Assembly (NCBI GenBank): GCA_001643675.2
Contig: LSRY02000052.1
Location: 558,001 to 622,000 of the forward strand
Origin: Monocercomonoides exilis PA203
Lineage: Eukaryota > Protista > Preaxostyla
Reading direction: 5' to 3'
Length of the DNA stretch: 64,000 nt
Position 1 is the stretch's first letter; every line of letters begins with the position of its first letter. Shown here piece by piece: positions 17,125-64,000 of this stretch. A model generated the notes under the pieces. It made no database searches, was not told the DNA's origin, and saw nothing but the letters and a program-made list of their open reading frames with translations. Position numbers and translations under genes: made by a program.

Positions 17125-19007
17125 CCATTGGTGGAAAACCCGGTAGGTGGTGGAAAACCCGGTAGCTAACACTCGAAATAGTCAGTTTTTTTCATTGAAA
17201 AAGCTATCTCATTTTATTTTAAATATTTTTATTTTTGTTTTGGAAGATGTTTGTGAATATAAAATTTTATGTTTATAAAAAAACTTTTCGAAATTCGTTG
17301 AGAATATTTTTTTCTATAATTTGATCAAAAGCATTAAAATATAAAAATAATACAAAAATCTCAGCTACAGTGTGTAGTTCATGTATGCCGAAAATATTTC
17401 ATTAAGCCATTAATAATAAATTATATTTCTCTATTATACAACTATTATTTTTAGTGAACGGGCACGCCAGATACATGCTTTGATTGGAACTTGCATTTTT
17501 GGAAGTCAAACATTTCATATGCAAGTTAACAGTTTGTTATTTTTTTAATGTTATGCACTTTATTATTTTTTGCTATTCTCTTAGTTAAAAATACAAATTC
17601 ATGCTTTTTAGCTGATTTGACGATTGCATATTTTTATTTGAGTTTGTCAGTGTTAAATATTTCATGGCTTTTACGATTGAACAATATTGTGTAGAAAATA
17701 CTAACTTCTTGAGATTATTCAATTTTTAAAACATTTTAATAAGTTGATTCTAATATTTTTGACTTTTATCATTTTTAATAATTTGACGATAAGTTTGTTA
17801 AATGTTTGTTTCAAGTTCCAATTTTGTCTCTATTTATTTTTAAGTGTTATAAAGTAAATTTTGAATGTAATTATCACTTTAAATTTTTTTTAACGATATT
17901 GATAAAACAGTAGATATTTAATATATGTTTTTTACAAAATCACTAAATAAACATGGTTTCCGTCCATTTTCTAAAGAATGTTGAACAAAAATGTGCAATA
18001 ATTATTAATTACTTCAGTTTTTAATTAATAATGATATCTGCAAAACCGATTTATCAACAAATATTTGAAATTCAACAATCATGAGTTTTGAAATGCCACG
18101 TTGAAATTATTGTTATCACTCACTGGACAATAAAAATAATATGTTGAAATAACATATTGCCAATATTTGTTGAAAATTAATTGAAAAATCTCAAAATCTT
18201 AAATCTATTAATTAATAAAAATATATATATACAAATAAAATTTTAATAGCATTTAAATAAAAATAACAAAATAAATAACATCGTTTGTATATTATGTATT
18301 TTCAACTTGCCAAACATATAGAAACAAAATTGGAACTTGAAACAAACATTTAACAAACTTATCGTCAAATTATTAAAAATGATAAAAGTCAAAAATATTA
18401 GAATCAACTTATTAAAATGTTTTAAAAATTGAATAATCTCAAGAAGTTAGTATTTTCTACACAATATTGTTCAATCGTAAAAGCCATGAAATATTTAACA
18501 CTGACAAACTCAAATAAAAATATGCAATCGTCAAATCAGCTAAAAAGCATGAATTTGTATTTTTAACTAAGAGAATAGCAAAAAATAATAAAGTGCATAA
18601 CATTAAAAAAATAACAAACTGTTAACTTGCATATGAAATGTTTGACTTCCAAAAATGCAAGTTCCAATCAAAGCATGTATCTGGCGTGCCCGTTCACTAA
18701 AAATAATAGTTGTATAATAGAGAAATATAATTTATTATTAATGGCTTAATGAAATATTTTCGGCATACATGAACTACACACTGTAGCTGAGATTTTTGTA
18801 TTATTTTTATATTTTAATGCTTTTGATCAAATTATAGAAAAAAATATTCTCAACGAATTTCGAAAAGTTTTTTTATAAACATAAAATTTTATATTCACAA
18901 ACATCTTCCAAAACAAAAATAAAAATATTTAAAATAAAATGAGATAGCTTTTTCAATGAAAAAAACTGACTATTTCGAGTGTTAGCTACCGGGTTTTCCA
19001 CCAATGG
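17125..19007. mobile_element. Non-autonomous foldback-type element, ~690-bp near-perfect TIRs, TA target duplication
   Basis: TA|CCATTGGTGGAAAACCCGGTAG...CTACCGGGTTTTCCACCAATGG|TA; arms 17125-17833 and 18318-19007 are reverse complements; ~485-bp AT-rich spacer; no ORF. Confidence 0.9.
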
Positions 19008-19211
19008 TATTGGGGATATTAAAATGAATGAAAAACCTGAAAATAACTTATCTATGTTGTTCAAATTCTCATTTAAAACAAAATATTGATCTATTCAACA
19101 ATTATTAGGGTCATAGTTTTATCTTGACATTTTGTTTTTTATCAAGACCTTTTTTTTTTGTTTAATCAGTATCTTTTCCCACAATTTCATATTTGAAAAG
19201 AATTTTAAGTA

Positions 19212-19472
19212 CATGGGTGATTATTTTTGAAATCATATCTTTTTTCGGGGTGTCTGTTTTTTGAGATTGTCAGATAAATAAAAGAAAATTTTAATTCAAA
19301 AGTGAAAAAGCATGATAAATGTTTTTAAAACAAATGGTTTTTCGGAATCAAAGATTAAAATGTTAACAATAAGCCTTTTCACATTTTTGTCATTATTTCC
19401 ATATATTCAAGTGTAATTTTTGAACCGAAATTTTTGAACGAAAAAATATGATTTCAAAAATAATCACCCATA
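19212..19472. mobile_element. ~260-bp MITE nested in the 5' region of copy A
   Basis: TA|CATGGGTGATTATTTTTGAAATCATAT...ATATGATTTCAAAAATAATCACCCATA|TA. Confidence 0.8.
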
Positions 19473-19754
19473 TATGTGAATTCAATAGATAAAAATAAAT
19501 ACATTTTGAAACAAACACAATTTCGCATGGGGGGAAGATGGGGGGTTAGGCTCCTTCATTGAACTTCTGTGTAGAATTGGAGGGTTACATGTGGCATAAA
19601 ACCTTCAGTTTGTTAAAAATGTTATTTTTCGATTTTTTTTCATATAATTTCAATTAAAAAAATAAAAAATTATTATGATCTTAAAAATATTATAAAAAAA
19701 ATGAAAATATCTACAGAAACAAAATAAAAAGGTCAGAAAAAATTACAGAAAGCA

Positions 19755-21009
19755 ATGTCTTCACGCAAGTACAGGAATTATCACAGTCGGCTGGATCGAA
19801 TGGCTCACATCGTTGTCGATGGAGTTGTTAGCATAATGGATACTATTAATTCCAAGGAATTCAGCCGTACAGGAATAAAGAAGACAGTTAGAGCGCTGAG
19901 AAAAGGAAGGCTGGTTGGAAAAGTTGGCAGACCTGCAACAGTTGTCGGAGAAAAGGAACAAAGAGTTTTAAATATTATTCACATTGAAGCAAAGTCTTGA
20001 ATATGTTGACTTTTAAAAAAACAAGTGAATTGGTTTGTTATATTTTTATTTATATGTTAAAATCATTTGTTTTTCAGAAGGAAAACGTTAAAAAGACAAC
20101 GATGATGAAGACGCACCATTTACAGAAGTTTCAATGTCTACGGCATATGGCCTTGTCAAGCATCACCCGGAGCTGAAGACTGGAACGCAGAAAAATTTGG
20201 ACATCAACAGACTGGCTGTTTTGTGCAGAAGCGTTTTTAAACCCTGGTATAAAACATACGACGAGCTGCATGAAAAATACCGTTTCAGTCCAGCTTTAAT
20301 TGCAAACATCGACGAATCTTCAACGCGCGTTCCCACAGACTCAAAACAGCTTGTTGTGCATACTACAGATACGAAAGCAGGTTTCACCAAAGAACCGCCA
20401 AGAATGATTAATTCCACATTCGTGGCAGCTGTTGCAGCGGACGGATATGCCTTTCCTTCTGTCATTTTGTGGCCAAGTGTGAAGCTTCCAGAAGAGCTGA
20501 AAAGCCTGTTATCTCCAACGCTTGAGATCTGGGCAAATGGAAGCGGCTGGATGGACAACGAGTGCTTTAAAAGGTATGCTCTTACGATTCTTCTACCTTC
20601 GATTATCGAAAGACGAAAGCGCATGTCACTTGAAAATAAACACATTCTTCTCCTTCTTGATTCTCATGTTTCTCGCGCAGATCCATCAATCTGGCGAGAA
20701 TTCCAAAAACAACAAGTCGACGTTTTAACCTTCTTTCCACACAGCACACACCTCTGTCAACCACTGCACAGAGGAGTGTTTGCTGTGTCCAAATCTGAAC
20801 TGACAAACAGATTTGAAGCTCCATCTTCTTCTTCATCTTCCTCCAAACGAGCAGCAATTTCCGACGCTCTGCCTCAAGCCATCCACACTGCATTATCTCC
20901 TTCTGTAATTCAGAAAGCTTTTGTCTGCAGTGGTGTTCTGCACAATTCTTCTGGGCCAGTTCTTTTGAAACTGCCCGAATCTTCGATTTACCCTCTTCTA
21001 TCCCGATGA
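19755..21009 (+). pseudogene. Inactivated DDE_1 (pogo/CENP-B-like) transposase
   Basis: N-terminal GRP motif; frame break near 20000; GT-AG intron 20033-20077; IANIDES (D1 20311), LLLLDSHVSR (D2 20659), HLCQPLH with third Asp replaced by His (20767, spacing 35); premature TGA 21007-21009 before NRFNFYGKVITDE. Confidence 0.88.
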
Positions 21010-23576
21010 AATAGATTCAACTTTTATGGAAAAGTGATAACCGACGAAAATCTTTTAGAGAAATGGGAAAATCATTTGAAAATGAATATTGAAAGGAAAA
21101 ATGAAATGGATGAAAAGGAGAAAGATGAAGTGAAGACTGTTGTGGATGATAAAAAAAAAAAATAAAAAGAAAATTTCGACTTGTAAAAAACGATGATTCT
21201 GATGATGAAAAGAAAGATTATGCATTCAATAGAGGTGAAGGAAAAAGGAAAGTTATCAGAGGAATTAGTTCTGATTTTGTATTCTTCTAATTATGTTGTT
21301 TTTTTGAACTTTTCACACTTCATTTTTGGGTCAGAATAAAGAAAAAGGGTTAAAATATAATTATTACCCTCTATCATTAGAAACCTTCTATATTAATGCA
21401 TTAATATACGAAAAAATTAAAGAATTAAGAAAAATGTGAGAAATAATAAAACGGAACAATACAAATGAAGTGAAAAATATCTTTCCATGTGGCAGTTCCT
21501 TTTTTATCAGACTTTCTTTCAAGTTTTGATTTAATCATAAATCTCAATGGAATATTTCTTAAAGAATGAGTTTCCAAATACAAACATTTTGCTATGATGC
21601 AGTTTTGAATTAAATATATTTAATTTTTTATCCATTTTAAATAAAGATTTTGATCAAAATTTGAATAAAAGAATTATTGAAAAAAGGATTATCCATCTAT
21701 TCATGGTGCCAAATAAATTATTATCTAAATTTTGTTTTTTAAAAACAAACTTTAAGATGAATCTATATTGAATCATATTAATTGAGGAGTTGATAAACCT
21801 TCACCTTTCTATTAATTTAGCAGTGTGATTGAGAAATATTTTATTAACATTTTAATATGAATAACTCTTTTATACGAAAAAAGTTCAAGAAATAATTCGC
21901 ACGCAGAATATTTTTTTTTGTTTAAAAAAACTTTTTTTCTCATTTTTTAATCGTGTCATTTTTCATTGAAATAAATTGAATAAAAGACAATTTTTGAGAA
22001 ACTGTAAATTTTTCATTGAAGTAATTTTGTTATCTTGTTTTTCACTCGTTTTGAAAGAATGATAAAGAAATAATTTATTAAAAAAAATAAACTTCAAACA
22101 CTTAAAAAATATTTTTTTTGTTGAAGTTGAAAAATTTATTTGTTTTCAAATATCACATTTAAATTTAAATTACTCCTCTGTAATAATGATGTGGTCAACC
22201 CGCACATTTGCATAAACCCGCACACTTTGGTTTTGATGAAAGTTCAGACTGGATATATTTGAAAAATCAATTCGAATTTTTTTGTAAACATTTCTTGATG
22301 AGAGAAAAAATCCGCTATAAATAATATTTCATGTTGGGTCAGCTTTGATCTTTAAACTTGATCCTCTCTTTTTCCTCCACTATCTTTTGTTTTTGTATCA
22401 TATTAACTAACAGTTGAAATGGAAAAAAACAATATTAGTGGAAATATTCTTTTGTCTTTATTGTTCAAATTGTTTTTTAAAAGTGAAAATCAAAAAAGAT
22501 ATAGCAAAAGCCAAGAAAATGAATATCTTTTCAAAACGTTTATTAAAAAATCGTTGTCGTTGATTTCGATCCATAAAGTATTTATCAGCGTAGTGCAAAA
22601 TCAACTGTGCAAAAAAGCTGATGCACTATTTTGCATAATGTGCTGTCCTTGAAGAGACTTTAACATAACTTAAGAAAAGGAAACTGATAAATAAAATAAA
22701 GAATAATACCACACAAAATTTGGATGTTTTTCGTTTTATCACTTCACCACAGAAAGAACGAACAATTTTTGTTTTTTTAGTAAATTATCAAAACAAATTA
22801 TGGTTTTTGTCCCATGAAATATATTTATTCCAAAAATTTAAAATAAATATCTTGTAAAAGTGTTTTCAATGATATCTCTTCTCGCAACGATTATTTAACA
22901 ATTAATAATTAATTCAATGTTACGTTCTGATATTCGAGAATGAGCAAAAATGTTTGATTTTATTCTTGGCATTATAAATATTATTAATTTTTTATTCTGA
23001 ACATGAATAGAAAATAGGCAAGAGTGAGATGATTAACAATTATTCGAAAAAAAGATTTGAAACTCAAAAAAAATGAAAGGACTAGAAAATAACGAAATTA
23101 TTTTTCTAATAAAGAAAATTTCATTCAATGCAATAATTAAATCAAATTTGCTATTTGTTCTCGTAGTGCCGAATTATTACAGCTGAAAATTAATCCTCAT
23201 AAAAGCCAGAACGAATGGTGTGACATTTGATTGATTTTTTTATTAATTTAATGAAAAATAACTTTTTTTTTTACTTTTTTTATGATAATTATGGCGTTTT
23301 GGTTTGTTTTTCTTCGATATAAGAGAATTCTCTTTTTTCACATATCATTTTTTGTTTTCATTTGAAAAATGGCAAACATTGGTTAACTTATAGCTATATG
23401 AAGCACTATTCACTTTTAATCAAGAAATGAATGATTTCACCTCGAGATTTGCCATGGATTAAACAAAAAATCATCGTTGTTGTTTCAAACACTATCAAAT
23501 CAAAGTGACATTTGCACTATTCAAGAGGTGATAATTATGTGGATATGAGAAAGGCCGAAACATGATAAATATGGAA

Positions 23577-24055
23577 AATTCTTTTTGAAAAGTCGCAAAT
23601 GAATTATTTTCAAATAAAAAAAAATAAACATATTTTTATAAAATATTTGTCCGCGAACATCAAACTTCTCTAATGTAAAATCTATTTCTGGATAATGCTA
23701 TTTCAAACATTCTTAAGAAGATTAGTGAGTGGAAACAGAAATTTGAGCTAAATATGAAAATTTCGGTTTTTTTTGATAATTGGGTAAATCTTTTTGAAAA
23801 ATCGCAAATGTTTAATTTACAAATAAATCAAAAATTTCATATTTTGCTCAAATTTTTGTTTCCACTTTCGAAACTTCTTTAGAATGTGTGAAATAGCACA
23901 ATCCTTTTATAGATTCCATATTAGTGAAGTTTATGTGTTTACCAACGAAAATTTGAGCAAAATATGAAATTTCTGATTTATTTGTAAAATAAATATTTTG
24001 CGACTTTTCAAAAAGAATCACCCAAATATACATTTGCGACTTTTCAAAAAGAATT
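23577..24055. mobile_element. Nested MITE-like inverted repeats inside the central transposon
   Basis: Perfect 25-bp IR AATTCTTTTTGAAAAGTCGCAAATG at 23577-23601 / 24031-24055; inner ~80-bp IR 23779-23860 / 23945-24026 flanked by TA. Confidence 0.7.
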
Positions 24056-24851
24056 ACACATTTTTTCTAATTGATTGTGTTATTTTGAAGCAGTATTGTT
24101 ATTATTTTCGATGAAATGAAAACATTGTGAATTGATTTTTTAAAAACAATTATTCGATCATTCTTGTTTCATTTATAATATTGTCTTGTTCTCAAATTCT
24201 TTTCTTTTCATTGTTTTTCGACATCATCATCCTCATCAAAGTCTGGATGCACAACGTACTCCTGTGAATATTTAGTTGTCATTGTTTTTATTGACCGGGT
24301 GGAGTATATCTTTTGAATAAGATGAGTTTTGGTTGTTTCACTAATATCTTCATCTGAATCTTCCGTATTATTCAATTTTCCATAATCTTGTTCGCTATCA
24401 TTTCTTAATCTTTTTTTCTTTATTTTCTCATTTTTTGAATGTGTTTGTGTGTTTTGTGAAATTTGTGACGAAGATATACAGCTGGAGGAATAATATGATT
24501 AAGAACTGTTATATACTGATTGACTTTCATCCGAACTACTCGACGAATGTTCATGAGCATGGGATCTTTTATGTTTCATTTTGGGAAATAGCTGTTCATC
24601 CAAAATGTTATCCTTTCTTTCCTGAGAATCGGAAGGTTCGGTTTCTTCTTCTGAGTGATGAACTTCTCAAATTGTTCCAATCTGTTTTGGAGGTTGCTCC
24701 ATCTTTTCAAGTGAATCTTCCGAAGAAACAAACTTTGGAATTTGCTTTGAATACTCTGAATTTGCACAATTGTCGTATCCGCCAGAATCAATGAATTTTG
24801 TTTGTTTTTTTTTTCATTTGTTATTTATTCTTTTTCTTTCTCAAACAACTG

Positions 24852-26712
24852 TCAATCTGTCAGAAACTCATGAGCTGTGATACATTTGCCAGAAATGGAC
24901 CAACGTTTTGTGCTTCTTGCAGGCTTCACTTCGGGAGAAAGAGAATCAAGAGTTTGATCCACAACATGCGCAGTTGATGATGAAGTAACGCCAGCCTCTA
25001 AAAAGCCATGTCTTATTGTTTTCGGTGCCAAAGCGTAATAAACACAATCTGCGATTGCTCTGACGAATGGCATGAATTCTTTTTTCATTTTTTTTAATTG
25101 AAGGCTCACTTTTCACTTTTTTGAGTCGGCTTTTTAGTACTGCGTTTGGTCCGAGGTCCAAGGGTTGCAAAATGTGCGACGCATGCGCGGGAATAACAAC
25201 CACATCCACATTTTCAGATGCAAATTGCTAAAAAAGTTGAAGGTTCTGTCTTGACGAATGAACGTCAAAGATGATATGAGCAGGTGGAATGGGTTCGGTC
25301 TCCTCATCGCAGTTTGTCTTGACATTTTTATTTTTTAGGACTCTTTTTGTTTAAGCCTTTTTGTTTCAGTTTCTTCTTTCAACAACCAATTGATTTCATC
25401 GCAATTATCTTCACTTTTCAATAAGCAAGTGGAACAAGAAGCGTCTTCCTCAAAAAAAGAAACAAAATCTTCACAAGAATTATAAATTTGTCCATCGAAA
25501 TCCATTTGTTGTTCAGCAGAAGGCCAAGTGTGTTGAATATGAGAGTGAAAGTTGTCTGAAGTAACTTGTTGAAATTGAAGCGATTCTCTTTGAACAGAAA
25601 TCTCACTTTTTGCGGCTGCGAATTCACCAATATAGTAATATGATCTCCGTCATTAGAAGAGATGCCAGTTGTTTTCACTGTTTCTGAGATGTGTGAATTA
25701 TAAAAAAATTCGCAATCATTTGAGTTTTTATTCACATGTGAAGTGATTTGCGATAATTCTGAAATTGCATTTTCTTCATTTTGTATCTCTTCATGGCTTT
25801 GTATTTTCCTTCTTGACTGAAATGATTGTCTGCTCTCTGTTATTCCATTTTTTGATTTTCTTTTTCATTCTTTCTTTAAAATATCGTTTTATTCGAATCA
25901 CGTTTTATCGTTGCTTTCGAATATTTGGCAGCACATTTTTCATCAAAATTTCTTCGAATAAGTTTTTTGTCATGCATCCTTTGTTTGACGTACGCAATAT
26001 GAAATTTTCCTCACTCCACTGTTCTTTTATTTCTTTTTCAAATTTGTTGGGAAAGAGAAGATGTGTAGGTAGATGGCATCCATCTGCCCTAACAATAAAA
26101 AGAAGAGTCAAATGATGAAGCGGAGGAATTTTCAAAGAAGGAACGAATTTACATTTGCTCGAGACAACCCTTTTATTTTCTCTTTTGTCAGAAGATTGGT
26201 AAATTGTTTCATCCAATTGAAAGATCAATGAAGGATGATATTTTTTCTGTTTCATCAAGTTACGCAAGCTCGACAAAAAAGACAAAACATTACTTTTCAA
26301 TGAGGCTCTTATGCGTGCATGATCAAGCTTTATTGGATGGATTGTTCTAAGTTGTTTATGTCTGGAAAGAAAACCATATACCCAACGCATGCTAGGCATC
26401 TCAATATAAACAGCAGATTTTTCAGAACGTTGTTTTCTAATTCTCCAAGCCTTAGTTCATATAAACTTACTGGAAAAAACAAAGAAATCAAACTATTCTT
26501 GGGATGTCTTTCAATGTTGGTTGAGTCAAAACATCAACCCAATTTAAAAGTATTTCTTCTAGTCTATCTTCTTCCTGTGACAAATATCTTGGCCTTCCGT
26601 TTTTCCCAGCAATTTCTCCTTTTGAAATCATTCGAAGTGCCCTTTGTTGACAATAATAGCTATTTCGTTCAGATTAATTGATGTTTATTTTTTCTTTTTT
26701 CATATCATCCAT
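24852..26712 (-). pseudogene. Degenerate pogo-type transposase (HTH CENP-B + DD35D)
   Basis: PSMRWVYGFLSRH (HTH), IFQLDET (D1), IIFDVHSSR (D2 ~25266), IPAHASHILQPLDLG (D3 ~25158); several stops and frameshifts. Confidence 0.85.
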
Positions 26713-27484
26713 TAAAGAAAGTTGAAAAATGTTCTAAAATATTGTTTTTCGATGAAAATTATTTAAAGATATGTGATAAAACAACCATAACAGAATTTCA
26801 AAATAGTAAAATAAATGATTTGAAAATCCATATTCAATTGTTAATAACTTTTGATGGAAATATCAATTACAAAGAAATTTTCCTTTCATTTGAACTGAAT
26901 TGTGCGGGTTTGTGCAAATGTGCGGGTTTATGCGCACATCATATATATTTTTTTAAACTGACGGATGATTGATTAAATGATTTGTCAGACCAGACAGGCT
27001 TAGTTCACAAAAGCCATTTTTCTTCATAATTAGTGTTTGAAATAAAATTGTTCTGTTCAAAACAAATTTGAATTGAATCTTTTAATGTGATTCATTTTTA
27101 CCAGTATGATCATGAAGCCATAATTGGGATATTATTTCATCTTGACCCTTTTTCTTTATTCTGACCCAAAAATGAAGTGTGAAAAGTTCAAAAAAACAAC
27201 ATAATTAGAAGAATACAAAATCAGAACTAATTCCTCTGATAACTTTCCTTTTTCCTTCACCTCTATTGAATGCATAATCTTTCTTTTCATCATCAGAATC
27301 ATCGTTTTTTACAAGTCGAAATTTTCTTTTTATTTTTTTTTTTATCATCCACAACAGTCTTCACTTCATCTTTCTCCTTTTCATCCATTTCATTTTTCCT
27401 TTCAATATTCATTTTCAAATGATTTTCCCATTTCTCTAAAAGATTTTCGTCGGTTATCACTTTTCCATAAAAGTTGAATCTATT

Positions 27485-28739
27485 TCATCGGGATAGAAGA
27501 GGGTAAATCGAAGATTCGGGCAGTTTCAAAAGAACTGGCCCAGAAGAATTGTGCAGAACACCACTGCAGACAAAAGCTTTCTGAATTACAGAAGGAGATA
27601 ATGCAGTGTGGATGGCTTGAGGCAGAGCGTCGGAAATTGCTGCTCGTTTGGAGGAAGATGAAGAAGAAGATGGAGCTTCAAATCTGTTTGTCAGTTCAGA
27701 TTTGGACACAGCAAACACTCCTCTGTGCAGTGGTTGACAGAGGTGTGTGCTGTGTGGAAAGAAGGTTAAAACGTCGACTTGTTGTTTTTGGAATTCTCGC
27801 CAGATTGATGGATCTGCGCGAGAAACATGAGAATCAAGAAGGAGAAGAATGTGTTTATTTTCAAGTGACATGCGCTTTCGTCTTTCGATAATCGAAGGTA
27901 GAAGAATCGTAAGAGCATACCTTTTAAAGCACTCGTTGTCCATCCAGCCGCTTCCATTTGCCCAGATCTCAAGCGTTGGAGATAACAGGCTTTTCAGCTC
28001 TTCTGGAAGCTTCACACTTGGCCACAAAATGACAGAAGGAAAGGCATATCCGTCCGCTGCAACAGCTGCCACGAATGTGGAATTAATCATTCTTGGCGGT
28101 TCTTTGGTGAAACCTGCTTTCGTATCTGTAGTATGCACAACAAGCTGTTTTGAGTCTGTGGGAACGCGCGTTGAAGATTCGTCGATGTTTGCAATTAAAG
28201 CTGGACTGAAACGGTATTTTTCATGCAGCTCGTCGTATGTTTTATACCAGGGTTTAAAAACGCTTCTGCACAAAACAGCCAGTCTGTTGATGTCCAAATT
28301 TTTCTGCGTTCCAGTCTTCAGCTCCGGGTGATGCTTGACAAGGCCATATGCCGTAGACATTGAAACTTCTGTAAATGGTGCGTCTTCATCATCGTTGTCT
28401 TTTTAACGTTTTCCTTCTGAAAAACAAATGATTTTAACATATAAATAAAAATATAACAAACCAATTCACTTGTTTTTTTAAAAGTCAACATATTCAAGAC
28501 TTTGCTTCAATGTGAATAATATTTAAAACTCTTTGTTCCTTTTCTCCGACAACTGTTGCAGGTCTGCCAACTTTTCCAACCAGCCTTCCTTTTCTCAGCG
28601 CTCTAACTGTCTTCTTTATTCCTGTACGGCTGAATTCCTTGGAATTAATAGTATCCATTATGCTAACAACTCCATCGACAACGATGTGAGCCATTCGATC
28701 CAGCCGACTGTGATAATTCCTGTACTTGCGTGAAGACAT
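27485..28739 (-). pseudogene. Inactivated DDE_1 transposase, identical to copy A
   Basis: Identical 81-aa and 291-aa translations including D-to-H change and premature stop. Confidence 0.88.
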
Positions 28740-29021
28740 TGCTTTCTGTAATTTTTTCTGACCTTTTTATTTTGTTTCTGTAGATATTTTCATTTTTTTT
28801 ATAATATTTTTAAGATCATAATAATTTTTTATTTTTTTAATTGAAATTATATGAAAAAAAATCGAAAAATAACATTTTTAACAAACTGAAGGTTTTATGC
28901 CACATGTAACCCTCCAATTCTACACAGAAGTTCAATGAAGGAGCCTAACCCCCCATCTTCCCCCCATGCGAAATTGTGTTTGTTTCAAAATGTATTTATT
29001 TTTATCTATTGAATTCACATA

Positions 29022-29282
29022 TATGGGTGATTATTTTTGAAATCATATTTTTTCGTTCAAAAATTTCGGTTCAAAAATTACACTTGAATATATGGAAATA
29101 ATGACAAAAATGTGAAAAGGCTTATTATTAACATTTTAATCTTTGATTCCGAAAAACCATTTGTTTTAAAAACATTTATCATGCTTTTTCACTTTTGAAT
29201 TAAAATTTTCTTTTATTTATCTGACAATCTCAAAAAACAGACACCCCGAAAAAAGATATGATTTCAAAAATAATCACCCATG
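29022..29282. mobile_element. MITE nested in copy B (mirror of 19212-19472)
   Basis: Same TIRs and TA flanks in reverse orientation. Confidence 0.8.
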
Positions 29283-30016
29283 TACTTAAAATTCTTTTCA
29301 AATATGAAATTGTGGGAAAAGATACTGATTAAACAAAAAAAAAAGGTCTTGATAAAAAACAAAATGTCAAGATAAAACTATGATCCTATTTGCAAAAAAT
29401 ATTTAGAACAAAACTGTGATATTTTTTCAAATGCAAAAATTCAGCACAATATTCACAAATTAAAATAATGAATAAAATTAAAATAACGAAAATGACTATT
29501 TATTTAAAAGAAACATAAACAAATCAGGAAAAAAGTGCAATTATTTCCAAGGAATGAATTATATTTGTTTTGAAAAATAAAGTGACAGTTTGAGAACAGA
29601 TGATGATTCTTTAATTTCAATATTTCCTTTTTGTGAAAGCATGAAAAATTCCATTGAATATATGTTTCTCATTTTTGAAGATATTGAAAATCATATATTC
29701 CATTATAAATGAAAATATTAAAGAAGATACATTTTTTTGTAATCATTTTGGAAGTTTTCAAAGAAAAAATCCGGAACCAATAAGTTATTTTTTAACCTGT
29801 AATTCTTGCAAAATTAGATAAAAATAAATAGATAAAAATTTTCAAGAAATATTATTCAAATCGAAAGTAAAATATTCAAAAAATTTTCGCTATTTAAAAA
29901 ACTAAGACAAAATGCAGTTTCTTCAATGGCCTCATCATTGAAATTAATTTGATTGAAACAAATGTGAACTATTTCCAATGGAATTTTTAAAAAAGGAAAT
30001 AAACACATATTGATGT

Positions 30017-53473: not shown

Positions 53474-54937
53474 AACTGAAGATGAAATTCAAGAGCTGTC
53501 CCCTGTAAATAAGTTTTCAAGTTTGTTAATTTTCACAATTGTTTTAGAGGCACATATTTTTTGTACCAATTATTTTCTAAGAATTGTTCACTGAGCTGGA
53601 GTTTTGTGTTGAAATTGACCAGAAAGTTAAAATCGAAGAAATAAATGGACTTATGGAAGAGATAGGAAAAGAAGAATTTCGATATTTTTTCACAACAGAG
53701 CTGTTCAACAGAATAGACAAAATGATTGGAAAAAAGGAAAATATTAATGGAAACTGCACTTGCCTTGCTGAAGCATGTCGGGTATTTCAATATAATGAAG
53801 GGCATCCACAGTATTTTTTTTGATTATTCTTCATTGAGCAACAGATTTGAGAAGATGATTGCTGATGAAAATGAGAAGAAAGAAAGGAAAAATGAAAATC
53901 TACTGTTTGATCTTTGTGAATGTTATCTGATACTGAATGAAAACTTCGTTTCTGACGAATTGTTTACTGTTTGTTTTCGCAGCCTTCTTGTTGTTGCATC
54001 GAACAAAGAGGAAAACGAGGAAACACAAAAGGAAGTGGAAATGGCATTTCTTGCTTTGAGCTGCATTTTTGGATTTTGCGTATGAGAATTTCCGTTTAGC
54101 TTTTTGAGTTATTGTGTTTTCTTTTACTGACTTTAATTAGAAAACGCAAGAAGAACTTTTCAGGGAAAAAATCAAAGAAATTATCCACTTCCATCAGGAA
54201 CGTCACAATCTTACACGAATTACCCATCAATCGGCTTGGCAGTTTTTGATTAACCGGACTCCTTTCAAAGAAAGAAATTTGGAAGAAGTAATTGTGGATG
54301 AGCTACACTTTGCGAGAGAGGCAGCAAAAGAATTGAAAGAGCTATCGAAATCCATTGATTGGAAGAAAAAAAAGAAAAAAGTGGAAAAGATGAGAAAGAA
54401 GAGCTTTCTTTGTTGAGATGGCTTGTAACGCTTGTGAATTATTTTCTCTATTGTGGATCGAGGAACGAAGAATCTGAACTGCTTATTAACAGCATTATTC
54501 GAGTGTTCCGAGCAGCAAAGAATAATCACAGAGATATATGCAATCAATGCATTTATTCCTTGGGAAATGCAGCGATAAATAGATTTGTGAAGATTGATGC
54601 CTTACTGAAAGCCAAGGCAATTGATGTTGTTTTGGAGGAATTTCAGCAACAAACAGTGGATTACAAAATTGCGTATTACGGCTTGATGTTTTAAATGACA
54701 GTTTCAAGGCAATTGAAAGGAAAGGATAAAGACGAAAAAAGAAAGCAAAAAAAAAAAGAAAAGAAAAGAAAAAAAGAAAAGAAAAGAAAAGAAACAAAAA
54801 TGGAGTTACTTGAATAGATGGAAGAAGAAAGATACGATGATGTCATAGCATGCTTTCAAGAGATAATTAATTTTCTTCACAGTAAATTTTATAATTCTTT
54901 ATCATTGGATATTTCTGATTATTTTGTGAATGCTTGA
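53474..54937 (+). pseudogene. Frameshifted member of the same expanded family as 15825-17095
   Basis: LFTELEFC..KIEEINGLMEE, LLKHVGY, FEKMIADENEKK..LCECYL, QKEVEMAFLALSCI, terminal MEEERYDD...DISDYFVNA*; several frame breaks. Confidence 0.8.
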
Positions 54938-57626
54938 GGAAATGATAAGTTATTTGGTTTGCAACAAAATAATATGTAGATAAATATTGCTTTGTTTGCG
55001 TTTTGCGAGCAGAAGTATAAATGTTTCAAAGCCATTTTTTCAACATATCTTTGATTGAAACTTAACAACAAAAAAATATGAAAAATACAAATGGTTGTTC
55101 ATTTGTTTTTTTTTTTATTTATTCAAAAATCTTCTTTAAATGAATTGTTTCTTTCTTGAAAAAAAAATTCACCTTTTATTTGTTCTGTGAATATCTTTAA
55201 CAACGTTTTCTGCGCATTTTCATGATAAATGTATTTTTCTTTATGCTTCCTGTGCTTTCTCCAACCCCGAATAATTTTATAAAAATTGAAGAATGAAAGG
55301 GAAATGTATCGAGTGTGACTGTAATGCATGTATTTAATGAGAATAAAATGAAGAAGAATCCTGAGGATGAGAAATTGCAATTAAAATACAATTATAATAA
55401 TAATAAGCTGTAAATGCTTCTCATTTGAAAAGCATTCCCTCCAATTCCTTACGAGGTTGATTTGTGTCTCAGAAAGGAAAAAACTACGTAAGATAATGCT
55501 TTCAATCACTCATTTTCTCTGGAAAACAGCAACAGACTTTCTGTCGATCACTGCTAACTGATTTTCCGGCTTTCCGAAAGGCAGCATCCGTGATGCTTCT
55601 GTGTTATTTTGGATTTCCCCTCCTTTGATCTCCCTGCGATTGTAGAACGTATCATTAGCTTCTTTAACAAAAAAAAACTGTGTTTTCAAAAATATCTTTT
55701 CTTCTTTTTCTTATAAAACGATTTCGCCCTTCTTTCATTTATTTCCTTGTTGTTGGTCTTCCGTTTTAACTTAAACTAGGTTTGGTTGTTTTACAAAGAA
55801 CAGTCAAGTGTGCTGAAGATGAACAAACTTGGATATGCTCTTTTCTGATGAAATGCGAATTTGTTGAAAGATATATGAGTAATTGCAATTCGCAACTTTA
55901 GTTGGAGTTGAAGCGCTAACCGTAGGAAAGTTAATATGGACTGCAGGTGCTCGGAAAAAGATTAATATCAGCTTCAAAGTGATTTTCCGAGTTGATCAAA
56001 ATTTAAGTTGCAAGCCTATTTGAACGATTGAAATTGTTTTTCGTTTTTTATAGCAAATAAAGCACAATTAAGTTGTCCTGAGCAATAACATTCATGAAAA
56101 TTTCCGAGAATTTTGGTAGTAATCGGTCTGAGTATCATTATATGTCAGAAATTATAAAAACTTAAAATCTCTAAAAATAGGCATAGTTCAACATCCAGAA
56201 AATCACGTCAAAATAAGCATACATTGTTTATTCAAGAAGTGCATTTTCATTGTCCAACGTTGAAATTATTGCAACTCTCAAATACTCCAGATTAAAAGAA
56301 TTTTCACGCAGTTATGATGAAAGGTCCAGGATTTTTAGCGTTGAATAATTGTCTAATATGACCCAGATATTCCAAATGGTAATTCGAGGAGGAACAAAAG
56401 TGTCTGTTCTTCAAACAAAACGGGTTTATAATGAATGCAAAGGAAAAGTAATAATAAAATCGCTCAAACTGGTTATATGCAATGTAGTTGTAAATAACAT
56501 GCAGATGACTACTCAAATATTCAACTAATTAGCAAAACGTCATCATCTAATTAGCGGTGCTGTTGTTTTCACATAATGAAGAAATGTAGTATGTAACATG
56601 ATCATAATTTTCATCAAAATGAATTCTTGATAAAAACATTTCATTTTCACAAGAAAAACTCTTTTCAAAAAGTGGAAGATGACATTGTATGGATTTTTGA
56701 CCATTTATGATTTGCTGAATAGAAAATTCTCATTTTAATTTGAACTTGAAATATGTTCAATTATTTTAGCCTGGCTATTGTAAAGATAAATGAGAGTATT
56801 GGTAAAGGGGTCATGCCTGAGAAGGACGGATTAGACGAATCCGAGTTATCAGAGGGCTGTGCGTCTCAGAGTGTTTTGTTTGCACGATTTACTGAGGCTT
56901 AACTCTGAATATTGTCCAATTAAAAAATTTTGACTAAGTAGGAAACGAAAAAAAAGTCCGTCTAAATTATTAACCCCACAAGTTAATGTTTTAAAATTCA
57001 TAGATATTCTCTTAAACCTTTTGAAGGGTTTTTAACGTATGAATGATTGAATATAAAAACATTGAAAAAAACTTTAACGACGGATGATTGGAAAGCCTTA
57101 ATAATACCATGGATGAAGTACTACCCCCCAAATTAATTTTGGGAAAGGAAAAAATAAATGGGAATTTGAGGGAATCCAATGTGGGAAAAAGTCATAAAGG
57201 ATGAAACTTTTTTGAATCAAAAATAAATAATTTCAAAAAATAAGTTTCTATTCTTCTTTTAAAGGAGTTGAAAGAAACATTTTCAAAAAGATGATGATAT
57301 TAATCAAACAGATTAAGTCAAAACTTTTTTAAAGTTAATTTTTGAGTCAAAAAAATTGACACAAGTCAAATGAAAAATTGGGTCAAAATTGACCAAAAGT
57401 TAAAAATGTTTCTGACTGCAACAAATGAGAAGAAAGAAACATTTTCAAAGATGATGAAAGCATGTGCTAATCAAGTTCGATATGGTTGCACATTGTTAAA
57501 GTCATCATTTCTTTGAAGTATTTTTGACTCAAAAAAAGACACTTTCAAAAAAAGTTTCTAACTCCAAAAATAGAAAAAAAAGGGGAAAAATTAAGGAATA
57601 AGTAAGAAACAGGCACGTGGGGTGGG

Positions 57627-57698
57627 GGCCGCGCGACAAACGCGGCAAAAGGGCGGGGAGCGTAAGCGACCGAACTTTTGCCGTGTGGCGCGTCGGCC
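57627..57698 (+). other. GC-rich imperfect hairpin capped by GA-GC-GTAA-GC-GA
   Basis: GGCC..ACGCGGCAAAAG..CGG GGA GC GTAA GC GA CCG..CTTTTGCCGTGT..GGCC in otherwise AT-rich DNA. Confidence 0.7.
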
Positions 57699-57894
57699 AT
57701 TGGGTGGGACTCTTTCCAATCAGAAAAGGCCTTTATTTTCTTTGATTTGACACCACCAAATTGTTCCTCTTGCTATGTTCAAATATGAAGGTTTTCAAAT
57801 TTTTGTTGAAAATTTTTGCCCCTCCCCCCTCGAAATCCTAAAAGTTTATCTTTTATTCTTTTTTTATAAACTTTATGTGATTTTCTTCTTTTTT

Positions 57895-58010
57895 TCGCGA
57901 GATGGATGAATATCTGCGCGCAGGAATGATGTGCGCAGATTTCATCCAGCGAGCGCTACCGGAGCAGTAGCGCGAGTGATGTGACCCTGACCTCGCGGTT
58001 AGCGAGAAAA
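57895..58010 (+). other. GC-rich multi-hairpin structure (possible ncRNA or ssDNA signal)
   Basis: Stems TGGATGAA-T-ATCTGCGCGCA / TGTGCGCAGAT-TTCATCCA, GCGCTAC/GTAGCGC, CTCGC/GCGAG. Confidence 0.7.
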
Positions 58011-59287
58011 TTTTGAAAAATAAGGAAAAAAAGAGGTCATTTTCTATTGAGAAAATTGATTTTTTTGTTTTATTTTTTTTGGAAAAAATACAATATTTTT
58101 CTTATGAAATATCTTTTTTACTACTTATCCCCTCTCATCTATTGATATAATTTTTATTAAAATCTAATATGTATTCCTCATGCTGTCATCATTTTTTATT
58201 TTTTTTAACTTTATATTTTTTTTTAATTTTTTATTTTTGATGAAAATTGGATAGAAGATATATGATATGATAATATTAATTGTGATGATATAATTGAAAG
58301 AATATTGTTAGTTGTGGTTGAATAATAATGAAAAAATAACATTCTGAAATATCAACAAAAATAAGATACTTTTTTGTTTGCTCAGAACCAACCATCAATA
58401 TCAGTATTCTTATATGTTATTATCATCTTTATTATATATATTATATTATATAAAATAACCAATTGAATTCAACTTTTCTTTGTGATGTTATTATTTTTTT
58501 AATTTTTTTTATTTTTGATATTATTTTTTTATCTCAACAACTGACTTTTTCTTTCTATTGAAAAAATTCAACAATAATGATATTATGATATTGTATATAA
58601 TATAATTTTTTAATGTTAATCTGTCCATCAAATTTGAAGATAAAAAAATAATTTCAATTTTTTGTTAAAAACAATAAGAAAATTATTTTTTTTATTTTTA
58701 CGGAACTTTCATTCCATCTCAATTTTTATATCAAATAAATAGTATTCATATAACACATCTCTATTATTTTTATTTTTAATATTAAAAGAAATCCTCTTGA
58801 GAAATAATTTTTTTAACCAAAATTTTCAATCTTAATTAATATTTTTCTTGTTATTCCATGAACAGATAAATTTGAAAATAATATTATGTATAGGTTATGA
58901 GGGGTGTGGAATGTGTTGGTGTATAGTGAGATTGGTAACAAACTGTTTTTGAGAAGTCGAATTCTTAACATAGAAAAATGGTTTTGATCTAGATCAAACT
59001 TTTTTTAAAAAAATTGATATTTTCATAAGAAGTAGGAATTAGTGGTTGATGAAAAGTTACGTATATGGGTAATAATATGAGGGGAATTGATTGGTGTGAA
59101 AATCAGAAATTAATTGATTCAAATTGTGGAATGATATGTTAAATAAAATTTTTTCAGTCAAAATTTACTTAATTATTTTTAAAATATCTCGATGAATAAA
59201 TTTTTCTAAGTTGTGAGACTTTACAGGAGTGTTAGTTGGACCAATTGTGAATTTTTGAAGTCAAGGTCAAAAATTCGAAAAATGCGA

Positions 59288-59350
59288 AATTTTTCATTTT
59301 TTCTGATTAAGTTGAATTTAGCTCAAGTTAGTCAGAAAAAATGAAAAATT
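59288..59350. repeat. 23-bp-arm inverted repeat
   Basis: AATTTTTCATTTTTTCTGATTAA / TTAGTCAGAAAAAATGAAAAATT, one T-G mismatch. Confidence 0.85.
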
Positions 59351-59949
59351 GGTGAAAATCGGTTTTTATGAAAGTTGTGATCGAAAGTTATGAAAACACA
59401 AAAAGTTCGGATAATTCACGAATAGTCCGCTGAATTTTTTTCTCGGGCCAGATTGGTCTGGTTAGTGAGAAAATGTGATATGAAGATTTTGACTGAAAAA
59501 GTGGTGATCTTAGATCAACGACCGAAAAATATGAGGTCTCAGATTCCTTTGATAATTGGCAGGTGGCAAGGACGTGGGCCCCTTATAAACATACTCGAAT
59601 CTAAATTTTTTCTACCGAGCGGTTGTGGCAGGGCAGTGCGGACAAGTTGGTCATTTTGACTGAAAAAATGAAAAAAATTTTTTTTCTCGAAAATTTCAAA
59701 GTCGATTTAAAATATGATTAAACACATGAATGTGAGTTGTAATGTTGTATATTGGTGATTTTTAATTGGATACACTTATCTGTAGTTTTTGAGTTATAAT
59801 CGAATTTTTGAGTGAAAAAGGTCATTTTTGAGGTAAATCGAGTATAACTCCAGAAGTAATGGCCAGATAATTTTGATATTAATGTATGATATATGTGCAT
59901 ATAGTTTGATAATAGCATGCATATGGGTGTTGGTGGCGGGTGTCTGGCA

Positions 59950-62900
59950 GGCTGTCCAGAAAAGAAATAAATTTTTTGACTTTGACTGGGGGTGCCTGGT
60001 TGGTGAAGTCACAGAGAGCGAACCAGGGGCAAGTGGCTGAATCGAAACACATATGACCGGCACAGTAACCCATGCCCGGATGTGGCCAAACGGCGTTACG
60101 ATCGGCCCAGTGGTTGCTGAGAAATTCCAGCGGCTAGTTGTTTTGAGTTCGGTTCTGATTTTTCACATAGAAAAATGACTTGGGGGTATTGACTTGGTGA
60201 TGCTGTGGAGTGTGAGAGGAGGGCAAGTGATCGGAGTTAGAGGGATATGTTGGGGAATGTTAGTAGATGTGAAATGTGGTGTAATTGCTAAGAGATTGGC
60301 CCAGTGGTTATTTCTGCACACATCAGTTAGTATATTTTTCCTTTAAAAATTGAATATTTTCTATGATAATTTTTCTATGTGATTTTGACTGCCCGACCTC
60401 GAAGTGCCATCTTTTTCGAAAAACTCACAGACTCAATTTGAGTTTGACTGAAAAAGGGGTTGAGTGGAGGATATCTGTGGAAGGGCTGATGGGCAGGGCT
60501 GGCAAAGGCCACAGGGCAAGTAGCGAGTAAGGCGGGCTATGGGCTGGGCCTATGGCTGGGCAGGCCCTGTGGCTTGGCCTGGCTCTATTCCACATATACT
60601 GTATTTCCCCAGTGAGAAAAAGTGAGTGAGGGTGGTGTGTTGGAAGGGTCGTGGAGCTTTACTGGTGAGAGCCAGAGCTCCAGAAACAAAAGTGACAGTG
60701 TGCGCACAGACTGTGGCTGCATGCTGGGCAGGGTGCTGCTGGGCGTCTCTGGATCCTTCTGGCTGGGTGGGTCAGACACTCACTTTTTTCACTGGAAAGA
60801 CTGACTGGAAAACCATCTTCATCGGGGTGTATCTTTTTATCGGTCATAACTTACAGCTTGGCTGATGTGGGCAGAGTGGGCGTGTGGGCAGTGGCTACAA
60901 GGCTGGGTGGTGGGAGTCTGGCTGGGCTGGCTGGCTGGGCTGTGGTATAAGAAAAAGAAGGTGAAAAATGACTGGGCCAGCCATTGAGGCACCCCATCTC
61001 TTTCAACGAACCTATCTCCTCAGGTGTTGGAGGGAGAGCTCCAGAAACAAAAGTGACGGTGTAGCGGGGGACCAGGGCTGTGCAGTGGGCGGGGTCTGGT
61101 TTGTGGGCTGTGGGCCGGGCCGGCTGGGTGGGCTGTGCACTGGGTTTTGTTCAGTCACTTTCATTGAAAAAACCTCAAATATGGAGAATGACCCCGGGTG
61201 CCCAGACAAGAAAATCCATCTTTTTCGAAAAACTCATAGACTCAACTTTACTACACTGAGGTTTCCTCGATTTTTGTGACTTTTGATACTAGAAATACAC
61301 TATGAAAATGGGGTGTCTGAAAAACCTGCTTTGATACTAAAAAAGGGGAAAATTACACTACGCCGAGGTTTTTGTGTCGTAGTGTAATAAGGATGATTTT
61401 GATACTAGAAATTTGAGCTCCTAGGAAAAGTGACTAAATTACACTACACTTCGAAAACCTCGGCGTAGTGTATTTCGAGGTTTTTGATACTAGAAAATTT
61501 TGTCTATGTAATTTCTCTATGAAAAATACACTGTGGACCTTTCATGTTCACAGACTCATAGCGCCTCAGGGGCAAGTCAGCGAAACTTCTCGTTGCCATA
61601 GAGGGTCTCGCTGCACACTCGCTCTACACAATGGTCGCAACCCTGAATCCATCCTATGTGATGCCCTGAAGTTACACACCAAATACTCATATCTTTCCTA
61701 TCAAAAACCCTTTCTCAATGATATTTTACACTATGGACCCTGTATATTCCATGGGTCATAGGGAACTACCTTTAAGAGCTGGAAAGTTCTTGATGCCATA
61801 GGGCAAGTAGCTATGCTCTTGGAGTATCCAATGGTAGTAATATCTTTGCCCTCGGTCCATATGCCTTTTCATTATACTCAATATACTGACATTCATATAT
61901 GATTTTTTCACTTTTTTCATAGGGTACCCATTGTGTTCCCACTGTCATATCTTTTTATCGGTCATAACTTACAGACATGCCAATGGTGCTGTGGGGTGGG
62001 CATGCCCTGCAGGTACATTGTGGCACACATTCGGCTGGTGGGCTGTGGCTCGGCTGAGGGCTGTGCCAGAAAAAGTGAGTCTTTTCCATTGACTTTTTGA
62101 GTGACTTGGACGCTCCTCATTGGCTGGCCTGTAGCGAATCACACAGGAATCTGGGAAAGTTCTCGATGCCATAGGGAAACTCGCTCCACACTTGCTCTAT
62201 CCATTGGTGCTATCGCCATTGCCACTGCTCAACTTCCCTTATATCTATGGTCGATATACTAGTATCCTTCCTATGAAAAACTCCTTTTCAATGAAATTTT
62301 ACACTAGGACCCCCTATGTTTGTTGGATCATAGCTCCACAGGGTTAAGAGCTGGAAAGTTCTAAATGCCATAGAGGGTCTAGCTGCACACTGTGCCTAGC
62401 CAATGGCAGTATCCCCATCTGGCTCCTATGTAATGCCACACCACTACACTCAATATACTACTATCTTTCATATGAAAAATACACTGACAAAATATTGACT
62501 GGGAACTCTTATGTTCCAGCCCTTGTAGTGCCTCAGGCTTGAGAGTGCGAGACTCGAAAATGTTATAGAGGGTCTAGCTATACTCTCCCTCTATCCAATG
62601 GTAGTGGTAGGATAACAACCTCTCTATTTGCTTTGGAGCCATAGGCAAAATACATGAACTTTTCATAGAAAAAGTGACAGACCTCCCCTGTGTTCCCGCT
62701 CTCATATCTTTTTACTGGTCATAACTTACAGCCAATCTGATATCACTGCAATGTGCCTACACACTGTGCCTACAATATGGCACACATCCAGTGTCTATGC
62801 CCTGCCTGTGTATTCCACTACAGCCATTACACTCACTTTTCATAGGGAAAGTTGACTCAGACCCCCTTATGTTCCAGCCCTTGTAGCTTGCCAGGCTTAA

Positions 62901-63540
62901 GAGCTGGAAGGCTGGAACAAAAAACCAGATGAAAGGCAGTGAGGGCATACACAAGGTGGTGTGGTAGTGGCAAGGCTTTGGTGTGTCCCCATCCCAAGAA
63001 ACACTATGGAAGGATACTAAAAATTTAAACCTAGTTTGAACCTAGTATCATTTTTGGGGATTTTCACTAGGCCGAGGTTTTCGCGACGTAGTGTATTTGG
63101 GGCACTTTTGATACTAGCCGATATTTTCTAGTATCAGTATACTCTTTATTACACTACGCCGAGGTTTTGGTGGCGTAGTGTAATTTTGAGATTTTTTAGT
63201 ATCAAAGCAGGTTTTTCGATGACCTCGTTTTTGTAGTGTAATTGTAGTATGAAAAAAGGAAAAAAACGCGAAAACCCGGGCGTAGTGTAATTGAGTGTAT
63301 GAGTTTTTTGGAAAAGATGGTGTTTGTAGTGCGGGCTATCGGGGATTTTTACGGAAGTATACTTAGGGGGACACCCCCCGAAAAAATTTTTTTTCTGACT
63401 TCATTTTTTTTCGACAAAAGTTGTCTGGTGAGGATAGTCTGAGCCAGGGCTTATGTGATATGGGGTTAGTATAGAAGTGTGACTTGTATATGAAACTCCA
63501 TAGGAAAAAAAGTGGATTTTGAATGAAAAATTTATATAGG
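59950..63540. repeat. Complex diverged satellite-like array (~195-200-bp units with higher-order recurrences)
   Basis: GGCCCAGTGGTT 194 bp apart (~60104, ~60298); GCCATAG-type motif at ~61596, 61797, 62169, 62368, 62563; ATCTTTTTATCGGTCATAACTTACAG at 60831, 61949 and a variant at 62706; AGAGCTCCAGAAACAAAAGTGAC at 60674 and 61035. Confidence 0.75.
61186..63350. repeat. Pair of ~310-bp diverged inverted arms (61186-61495 / 63040-63350) made of ATTACACTACGCC palindromes and TTTTGATACTAG boxes
   Basis: Colinear reverse-complement similarity, e.g. GAAAAACCTGCTTTGATACTAAAAAA at ~61319 vs TTTTTTAGTATCAAAGCAGGTTTTTC at ~63192. Confidence 0.85.
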
Positions 63541-64000
63541 GGGCTGTCTATTAGACTGAGGGATTGTGTAATAGTGGTCTATTGTATATATATGTATATA
63601 GTATTATGTCATATGTATAGCAAATAGGTGAGTAGGCTTGTATGTTAAGGAAGATAGTATATGGTATTTGAATGGGAATAATATGTATATGTCTCTTTGA
63701 ATGAAATACCTTGCATGATTATACAGAAACTCACTGAGTGAAGTATAAATGAAGGTGGTTCAAAAAGAGTGGGTTTGTTGGTTCTGATAAGAATGAAAAG
63801 CAACATGTGATTGTATATAAGGGCATCACAATACATGTTTTATGAAAACATCTTCTGGTAGCAATGGCTGATCAGATGGGTCGAATAATAAAGTGAGTTG
63901 TTTGAATCTTTGAGTCTGATGTGTAATAATGTTGGATGAAGAGGTTTGGATGACTCTAATAAAATCGATGTGTCTGAGAAGTTGTTGTGAGAGAGTGCTA

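Follow-up and report, generated by a model that had tools for sequence, protein, structure and literature searches.

A module of palindromic, directional sites, gathered in two inverted arms on either side of a repetitive core, lies in the ribosomal DNA (rDNA) intergenic spacer of Monocercomonoides exilis PA203, and its sites keep the same order and direction in the rDNA units that we compared. This feature of the spacer is real and well conserved, and it is apparently undescribed. By analogy with rDNA spacers of other eukaryotes, we propose with a probability of roughly 60% that the module is an RNA polymerase I promoter-enhancer region with clustered putative protein-binding sites. The DNA analysed, called the window below, is a stretch of 64,000 nucleotides of contig LSRY02000052.1 (positions 558,001 to 622,000 of the forward strand). 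An earlier note, made from these letters alone, had seen in it a protein-bound recombination, replication or segregation module. To see a protein-bound module here is reasonable in general terms, but the recombination, centromere and mobile-element-end readings are unsupported by the results presented here.

Rfam gave no match above threshold between 50 and 64 kb of the window. The rRNA genes appear in its continuation (L003), where Rfam places the start of 18S at window-equivalent position 64879, followed by 5.8S and 28S, all on the + strand; the 18S start is thus 1.53 kb downstream of the module end. In a tandem unit (L005, also annotated with Rfam), sequence matching the window begins ~250 bp past the 28S end and remains colinear, at 93.6%, up to the next 18S. 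This colinear match identifies the window from 56762 onward (56762-64000, + strand) as rDNA intergenic spacer and the start of a probable 5′ external transcribed spacer. The module accordingly sits between the 28S end and the 18S start of an rDNA unit, in agreement with the earlier suggestion that a location next to rDNA would point to a spacer element. About 50 rDNA units have been reported in the M. exilis genome (PMC6759080).

Other features were observed in and around this spacer. A short GC- and CpG-rich island (57600-58000) stands out in AT-rich spacer ~1 kb past the 28S-end equivalent and is a candidate terminator, barrier or origin. A palindrome at 59288-59350 in the upstream spacer has 28-bp arms (93%) separated by a loop of 7 nt, and an AT-rich palindrome of ~58 nt is found immediately 5′ of 18S (L003:14281-14338, window equivalent 64819-64876). 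The 18S match itself (L003:14341-17344) extends over ~3.0 kb, compared to 1.8 kb for the Rfam model. Hypothetical genes have been annotated inside the spacer (MONOS_18197, 17623, 18502, 18247, 18385, 17285 and 16380; window 60539-60987 and L004-L009). These models have no Pfam match and their structure differs from copy to copy; they are probably spurious. The open reading frame at 60968-61279 corresponds to no recorded protein and has no homologues. On the other side of the spacer, a member of a repeated gene family and a 0.8-kb block (64-88% alike) precede it on five contigs (window 53570-56750 and L006-L009), which points to an inner rDNA boundary common to chromosome ends. A 28S fragment is retained at this boundary in L006 and L008 and is absent from the window. 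Further away, two adjacent inverted-repeat structures (17148-19003 and 19106-29388) have arms of 692 bp and 2070 bp that are 100% identical, the larger one bearing DDE_1 (pogo-like) open reading frames.

The two mirrored arms of ~310 bp that had been described from the sequence are confirmed: the left arm (61192-61493, - strand) is an inverted, diverged copy of the right arm (63042-63344, + strand), and alignment of 61192-61493 with 63344-63042 gives 71% identity over 303 bp (E ~2e-47). Identity between arms is 70-76% across five units. Part of the outer arm block is present a third time (60390-60439, - strand), in the same direction as the left arm. The left arm carries S0, a degenerate half-site with its centre forward (61250-61275, + strand, located by arm alignment), the full sites S1 (61352-61388, + strand) and S2 (61438-61474, - strand), and four GATACTA boxes. 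The right arm, our candidate for the gene promoter, carries the full sites S3 (63061-63097, + strand) and S4 (63148-63184, + strand), the half-site S5 with its centre reversed (63265-63290, - strand, located by arm alignment and unit comparison), and further GATACTA boxes. All the sites listed by the earlier note were found where it had placed them, far above chance: the window contains 16 copies of the arm 9-mer with at most 1 mismatch, where 2.5 would be expected, and as many were found in 0 of 100 shuffles. Its count of about nine boxes in both orientations is also borne out, since nine GATACTA boxes, some pointing one way and some the other, lie within or next to the arms and one more in the core.

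The arm box and the GATACTA box have the hexamer AYACTA in common. Its density reaches ~30 per kb in the arms and 4.6 per kb in the core, compared to 0.3-0.5 per kb in upstream spacer and unique DNA, a low background that is partly due to general TpA depletion. We also considered that AYACTA might be avoided outside the module and rejected this, since general TpA/CTA depletion accounts for it. Between the arms, motif columns are 82-92% identical and the other columns 66-71%.

Read on the + strand, the three sites of each arm follow one another as forward, forward, reverse. For the arms to mirror each other perfectly, S4 would have to be reversed. In the global arm alignment, the longest run of mismatches is precisely the S1 centre facing the S4 centre, and the centre is therefore reversed relative to its flanks, as the earlier note had recognized.

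A site consensus was built from 19 full sites in six units. In the 37-bp sites, positions 1-23 are nearly fixed, positions 24-27 variable and positions 28-37 fixed again, so that the conserved geometry consists of two 10-bp boxes, inverted relative to each other, on either side of a 17-bp directional centre; the variable bases are the last four of this centre. The arrangement first proposed, with 13-bp arms and an 11-nt spacer, holds in the window for S4 alone; perfect 13-bp arms exist in some copies only, and the geometry shared by all sites is 10+17+10. The central 7-mer is identical in 17 of the 19 sites, whereas the 11-bp spacer differs between sites. Symmetry in full is limited to the outer 10 bp: the inner pair 15/23 is complementary in 0/19 sites and pair 14/24 in 4/19. 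Single sites fold well as DNA. Changes at positions 24-27 break pairing and are not compensated, which argues that neither a long hairpin nor a lox-type inner symmetry is conserved. The 7-mer GGTTTTC of the site centres is also present in a small hairpin between telomere-repeat runs (L008:11277-11297), possibly by chance.

Across five units, 121 of the 132 columns at fixed site positions are invariant, compared to ~80% in upstream spacer and core, whereas the four variable bases are invariant in 7 of 16. This contrast suggests constraint on putative binding motifs, to which site-to-site conversion could contribute.

The other units were retrieved with the first exon of the spacer gene model (60539), which led to six further loci on six contigs (L004-L009). 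Complete modules are present upstream of 18S in the window and in L005, L006, L007 and L009, and partial ones in L008 and L004. The five complete units, on five contigs, carry all six sites in a common order and direction, and their cores also run in the same direction. S1 is forward and S2 reversed in 6/6 units that retain them; S3 and S4 are forward in 5/5. The two broken units agree with the complete ones wherever sequence remains. L008 retains a matching left arm and is interrupted within the core at a telomere-like seed, and L004 has lost S1 and S2 via a join of the S1 start to a similar box in the first core repeat, and this very join is also present in two culture runs. Not one inversion was observed in the five complete and two partial units. 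Spacer divergence between units is 5-12%, and the right arm as a whole, with 79% of its columns invariant, is no better conserved than ordinary spacer.

We further compared window positions 60001-64000 with contigs from two gut metagenomes, one bovine and one from rat, and from two M. exilis culture runs of a single sample. No strand-change joint was among those listed for the four data sets; rare variants drop out of contigs. Bovine gut contigs are colinear from left arm to core and from core to right arm. A flipped S4 would add 11 mismatches, and the bovine contig over 63151-63534 has 6 in all, so S4 is unflipped there. Likewise, a flipped S3 would add 9 mismatches and the rat gut contig over S3 has 4. 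Contigs over S1 and S2 show differences no greater than those of unflipped paralogues. A few low-depth joints were detected in culture run X1, linking S4 to the S1 flank and S3 to S4. They fit variant S1, S3 and S4 copies aligned to the wrong site, an account drawn from the resemblance of S1 in L006 and L009 to window S4, and in contigs such joints look the same as real excisions.

The flip-flopped spacer of the earlier note is thus static, every copy examined having identical directions. Given these identical directions and no strand-change joint listed, we interpret the "flipped" centre as one old, fixed micro-inversion. On the evidence available, the reversed S1/S4 centre is historical and not dynamic, although rare flipping would escape contigs.

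The core (61501-63035, + strand) consists of degenerate subrepeats of ~195-200 bp, all in one direction, with weaker copies of the arm box. It is the part of the module that changes in length: the distance from S2 to S3 is 1587, 1524, 823, 1953 and 1950 bp in the five units. Sequence was gained and lost with breaks in the core subrepeats and not in the sites; more generally, rearrangement breakpoints are at core subrepeats or short microhomology and not at site centres. The core has blocks in common with spacer beyond the arms, with direction preserved (61948-62066 and 60830-60940), and is for this reason taken to be native spacer. At three loci, rDNA units were also found broken at short telomere-like seeds and directly adjoining telomere repeats: in a core subrepeat (L008:11245-11270), in upstream spacer (L004:3500-3570) and near the 18S 3′ end (L007:17667).

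Conservation of the spacer is highest directly after the right arm, in a stretch (63341-63500, + strand) with 152 of 160 columns (95%) invariant between the five units. The left arm, read leftwards, runs on into a degenerate version of it. The stretch holds TATACTTAGGGGG, found once per unit, 1508-1542 bp upstream of 18S in the five units. This motif resembles the plant rDNA start motif TCTTTAGGGGGG, in which initiation is at the A (PMC4043768). Its position and conservation, together with this analogy, designate A 63365 as the candidate polymerase I start, at or near which transcription would begin. Promoters of this polymerase are poorly conserved in sequence (10.1101/2024.10.30.621142), and a plant-like motif in an oxymonad is therefore only a lead. 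With +1 at 63365, the right arm would extend from about -325 to -20 and S4 from about -217 to -181. A second start-like motif (63533-63545) was rejected because it varies between units. In the RNA runs, 5-6% of words were present.

The order of these elements parallels that of known rDNA control regions. In mouse, a spacer promoter 2 kb upstream is followed by 6-22 enhancer repeats, the terminator T0 and the gene promoter (PMC6628108). M. exilis has an arm, 0.8-1.95 kb of ~195-bp subrepeats, a second arm and the best-conserved stretch with its start-like motif; subrepeats in variable number (823-1953 bp between S2 and S3) thus precede a conserved start region, as expected of a promoter-enhancer region. 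Under the promoter-enhancer reading, the right arm would form the upstream portion of the polymerase I promoter, transcription would start from ~63365 and the 5′ external spacer would measure ~1.5 kb. The core repeats would be enhancer-type subrepeats that expand and contract by slippage, and the left arm an old inverted duplicate of the 300-bp promoter arm, ~2 kb upstream, where a spacer promoter would be expected. The 37-bp sites and the GATACTA boxes, through their AYACTA hexamer, may be repeated binding sites for one or two rDNA-binding proteins, the inverted 10-bp boxes accommodating a dimeric binder next to a directional 13-bp centre. The S1/S4 centre could have been reversed once, by a template-switch micro-inversion between the arms of its own hairpin or through conversion of one of the two sites by the other, and concerted evolution would then have carried the reversed form into every unit. 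A reason for its retention may be that S1, S3 and S4 would then all face the direction of transcription, like polar terminator-type sites. Concerted evolution inflates similarity between units, which makes conservation weak evidence of selection. Against the promoter-enhancer reading stands the inversion of the upstream copy, since spacer promoters are, to our knowledge, direct copies. It is conceivable, if doubtful, that antisense spacer RNA is made from the left arm by a functional polymerase I promoter facing leftwards.

The lox-like appearance of the sites raised the alternative of an active site-specific recombination module, in which a tyrosine recombinase would invert the core or the site centres, or excise circles, perhaps amplifying rDNA as the yeast 2-micron Flp system does. 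Palindromic arms with a directional centre, the near-identity of the central 7-mer, the one centre that did invert at some time and the few low-depth site-to-site joints in X1 speak for it. Sites of the loxP/FRT type have arms of 11-13 bp around 6-8 bp. As in these, inverted arms surround an asymmetric centre and sites occur in both direct and inverted arrangement, but the M. exilis sites are built as 10+17+10 with varying inner bases, and the bases beside a centred 7-bp overlap are asymmetric and variable, so that symmetric arms do not directly flank a 6-8 bp overlap. Recombination products were not found either: no inversion or excision at sites was found in the seven assembled units, no strand-change joint was listed in the four runs, and the gut contigs have too few mismatches for a flipped S4 or S3. 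The arms have drifted to 70-76% identity, and deletions and insertions break away from the sites. No cognate recombinase was found among the ten window open reading frames scanned. An 888-aa gene in L008 gave a match to a Myb domain only (Pfam, PDB) and follows the telomere-seeded core break, not a site. Orientation is the same in every unit and in the independent gut samples, and the site geometry does not fit a tyrosine-recombinase crossover site; frequent flipping is largely refuted, and active recombination of this kind is very unlikely. We give as little credence to a host or domesticated recombinase that would act rarely or in particular states, inverting or excising spacer to amplify or move rDNA. 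The other two identities put forward at first, a centromere-like element and the end of a large mobile element, are not suggested either by a module found once per rDNA unit, next to 18S, at one fixed place.

A replication origin, a polar fork barrier of the rDNA unit or both, in which the arms would bind initiator or barrier proteins and the core between them would unwind, as in the upstream rDNA spacers of Tetrahymena and Physarum, is compatible with the promoter reading but unlikely in our estimation. Replication origins are commonly held by rDNA spacers, and the sites are clustered, directional and hairpin-capable. GC skew, at +0.2 to +0.6 on both flanks and ~zero to -0.23 over most of the core, also favours an origin; the change is local, and subrepeat composition and transcription could produce it. 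That a conserved start-like stretch abuts the right arm fits this reading poorly. It is quite improbable that the module is the relic, perhaps domesticated, of a foldback or MULE-like transposon with 300-bp terminal inverted repeats, inserted in an ancestral spacer and spread by concerted evolution. Long inverted arms with internal repeated motifs are indeed common to both, and the genome has many inverted-repeat elements, two of them in the window. Nevertheless, the arm ends are ragged, with neither sharp termini nor a visible target-site duplication, the sequence between the arms is native spacer, the module has one fixed position per rDNA unit and its motifs were not found in the ~77 kb of non-rDNA M. 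exilis sequence examined. The earlier note had named, as evidence against its own reading, the finding that the motif is a subterminal repeat belonging to a known TIR transposon and has one fixed orientation throughout; the orientation is indeed fixed in all copies, but the motif did not turn out to be such a repeat. A resemblance to CACTA-transposon or Helitron 3′ ends was rejected too, the flanks being inverted, not duplicated, and the hairpin-plus-CTAG lying at a fixed spacer position in both directions. We likewise rejected the relic of a head-to-head rDNA palindrome, as the left flank has no similarity to the 5′ external spacer. Finally, a hairpin-prone spacer might have been shaped by duplication, template switching and gene conversion into a by-product with no function and no selected sites. 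The 5-12% divergence between units, a right arm no more conserved overall, the loss of two sites in L004 and the ability of gene conversion between sites to keep motifs alike are all in its favour; the sharp contrast between fixed and variable bases inside the sites, the constant 17-bp spacing and the persistence of the sites in independent gut isolates run against it, and we hold little belief in such a neutral origin.

Returning to the promoter-enhancer reading, the likeness to the vertebrate rDNA control region lies in a promoter-like copy ~2 kb upstream, variable short repeats in between, all before 18S (PMC6628108), and directional sites near -200. In contrast to vertebrates, the upstream copy is inverted in M. 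exilis, the sites are palindromic with a directional centre, there is no similarity to the Sal box, and the promoter role is deduced from layout. The plant 35S rDNA spacer (TATA/TCTT-AGGGG) also has a subrepeat region followed by a start-like motif ending AGGGGG, and inverted start-like copies have been reported in oak and beech spacers (PMC4043768). Plants are an unrelated lineage, and 300-bp mirrored arms with 37-bp sites are absent from their plan. M. exilis units are chromosomal, arranged head-to-tail or as single subtelomeric copies, unlike the extrachromosomal rDNA palindromes of Tetrahymena and Physarum. The upstream spacer in these two organisms contains type I repeats and inverted repeats, with protein-binding elements common to promoter and upstream domains; M. 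exilis resembles them in having repeated, here putative, protein-binding elements in promoter and upstream spacer.

A scan of JGI metagenomes for the exact motif gave no hit. When metagenomes and viral contigs were scanned with a relaxed arm-N17-arm pattern, and bacterial genomes with the core, all matches were unrelated and lacked both the centre motif and a comparable cluster of sites. No paper describing the rDNA spacer of an oxymonad came up in our literature searches, and the word rRNA is absent from the main text of the M. exilis assembly paper (PMC8767320). An inverted promoter duplicate with palindromic, directional sites would be an unusual variant of the rDNA control plan and is not evidence of a new recombination system. 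If the promoter-enhancer reading is true, a polymerase I promoter, its start site and a binding motif would each have a precise candidate in an amitochondriate metamonad, and these could serve to build expression constructs and to look for the proteins that bind M. exilis rDNA.
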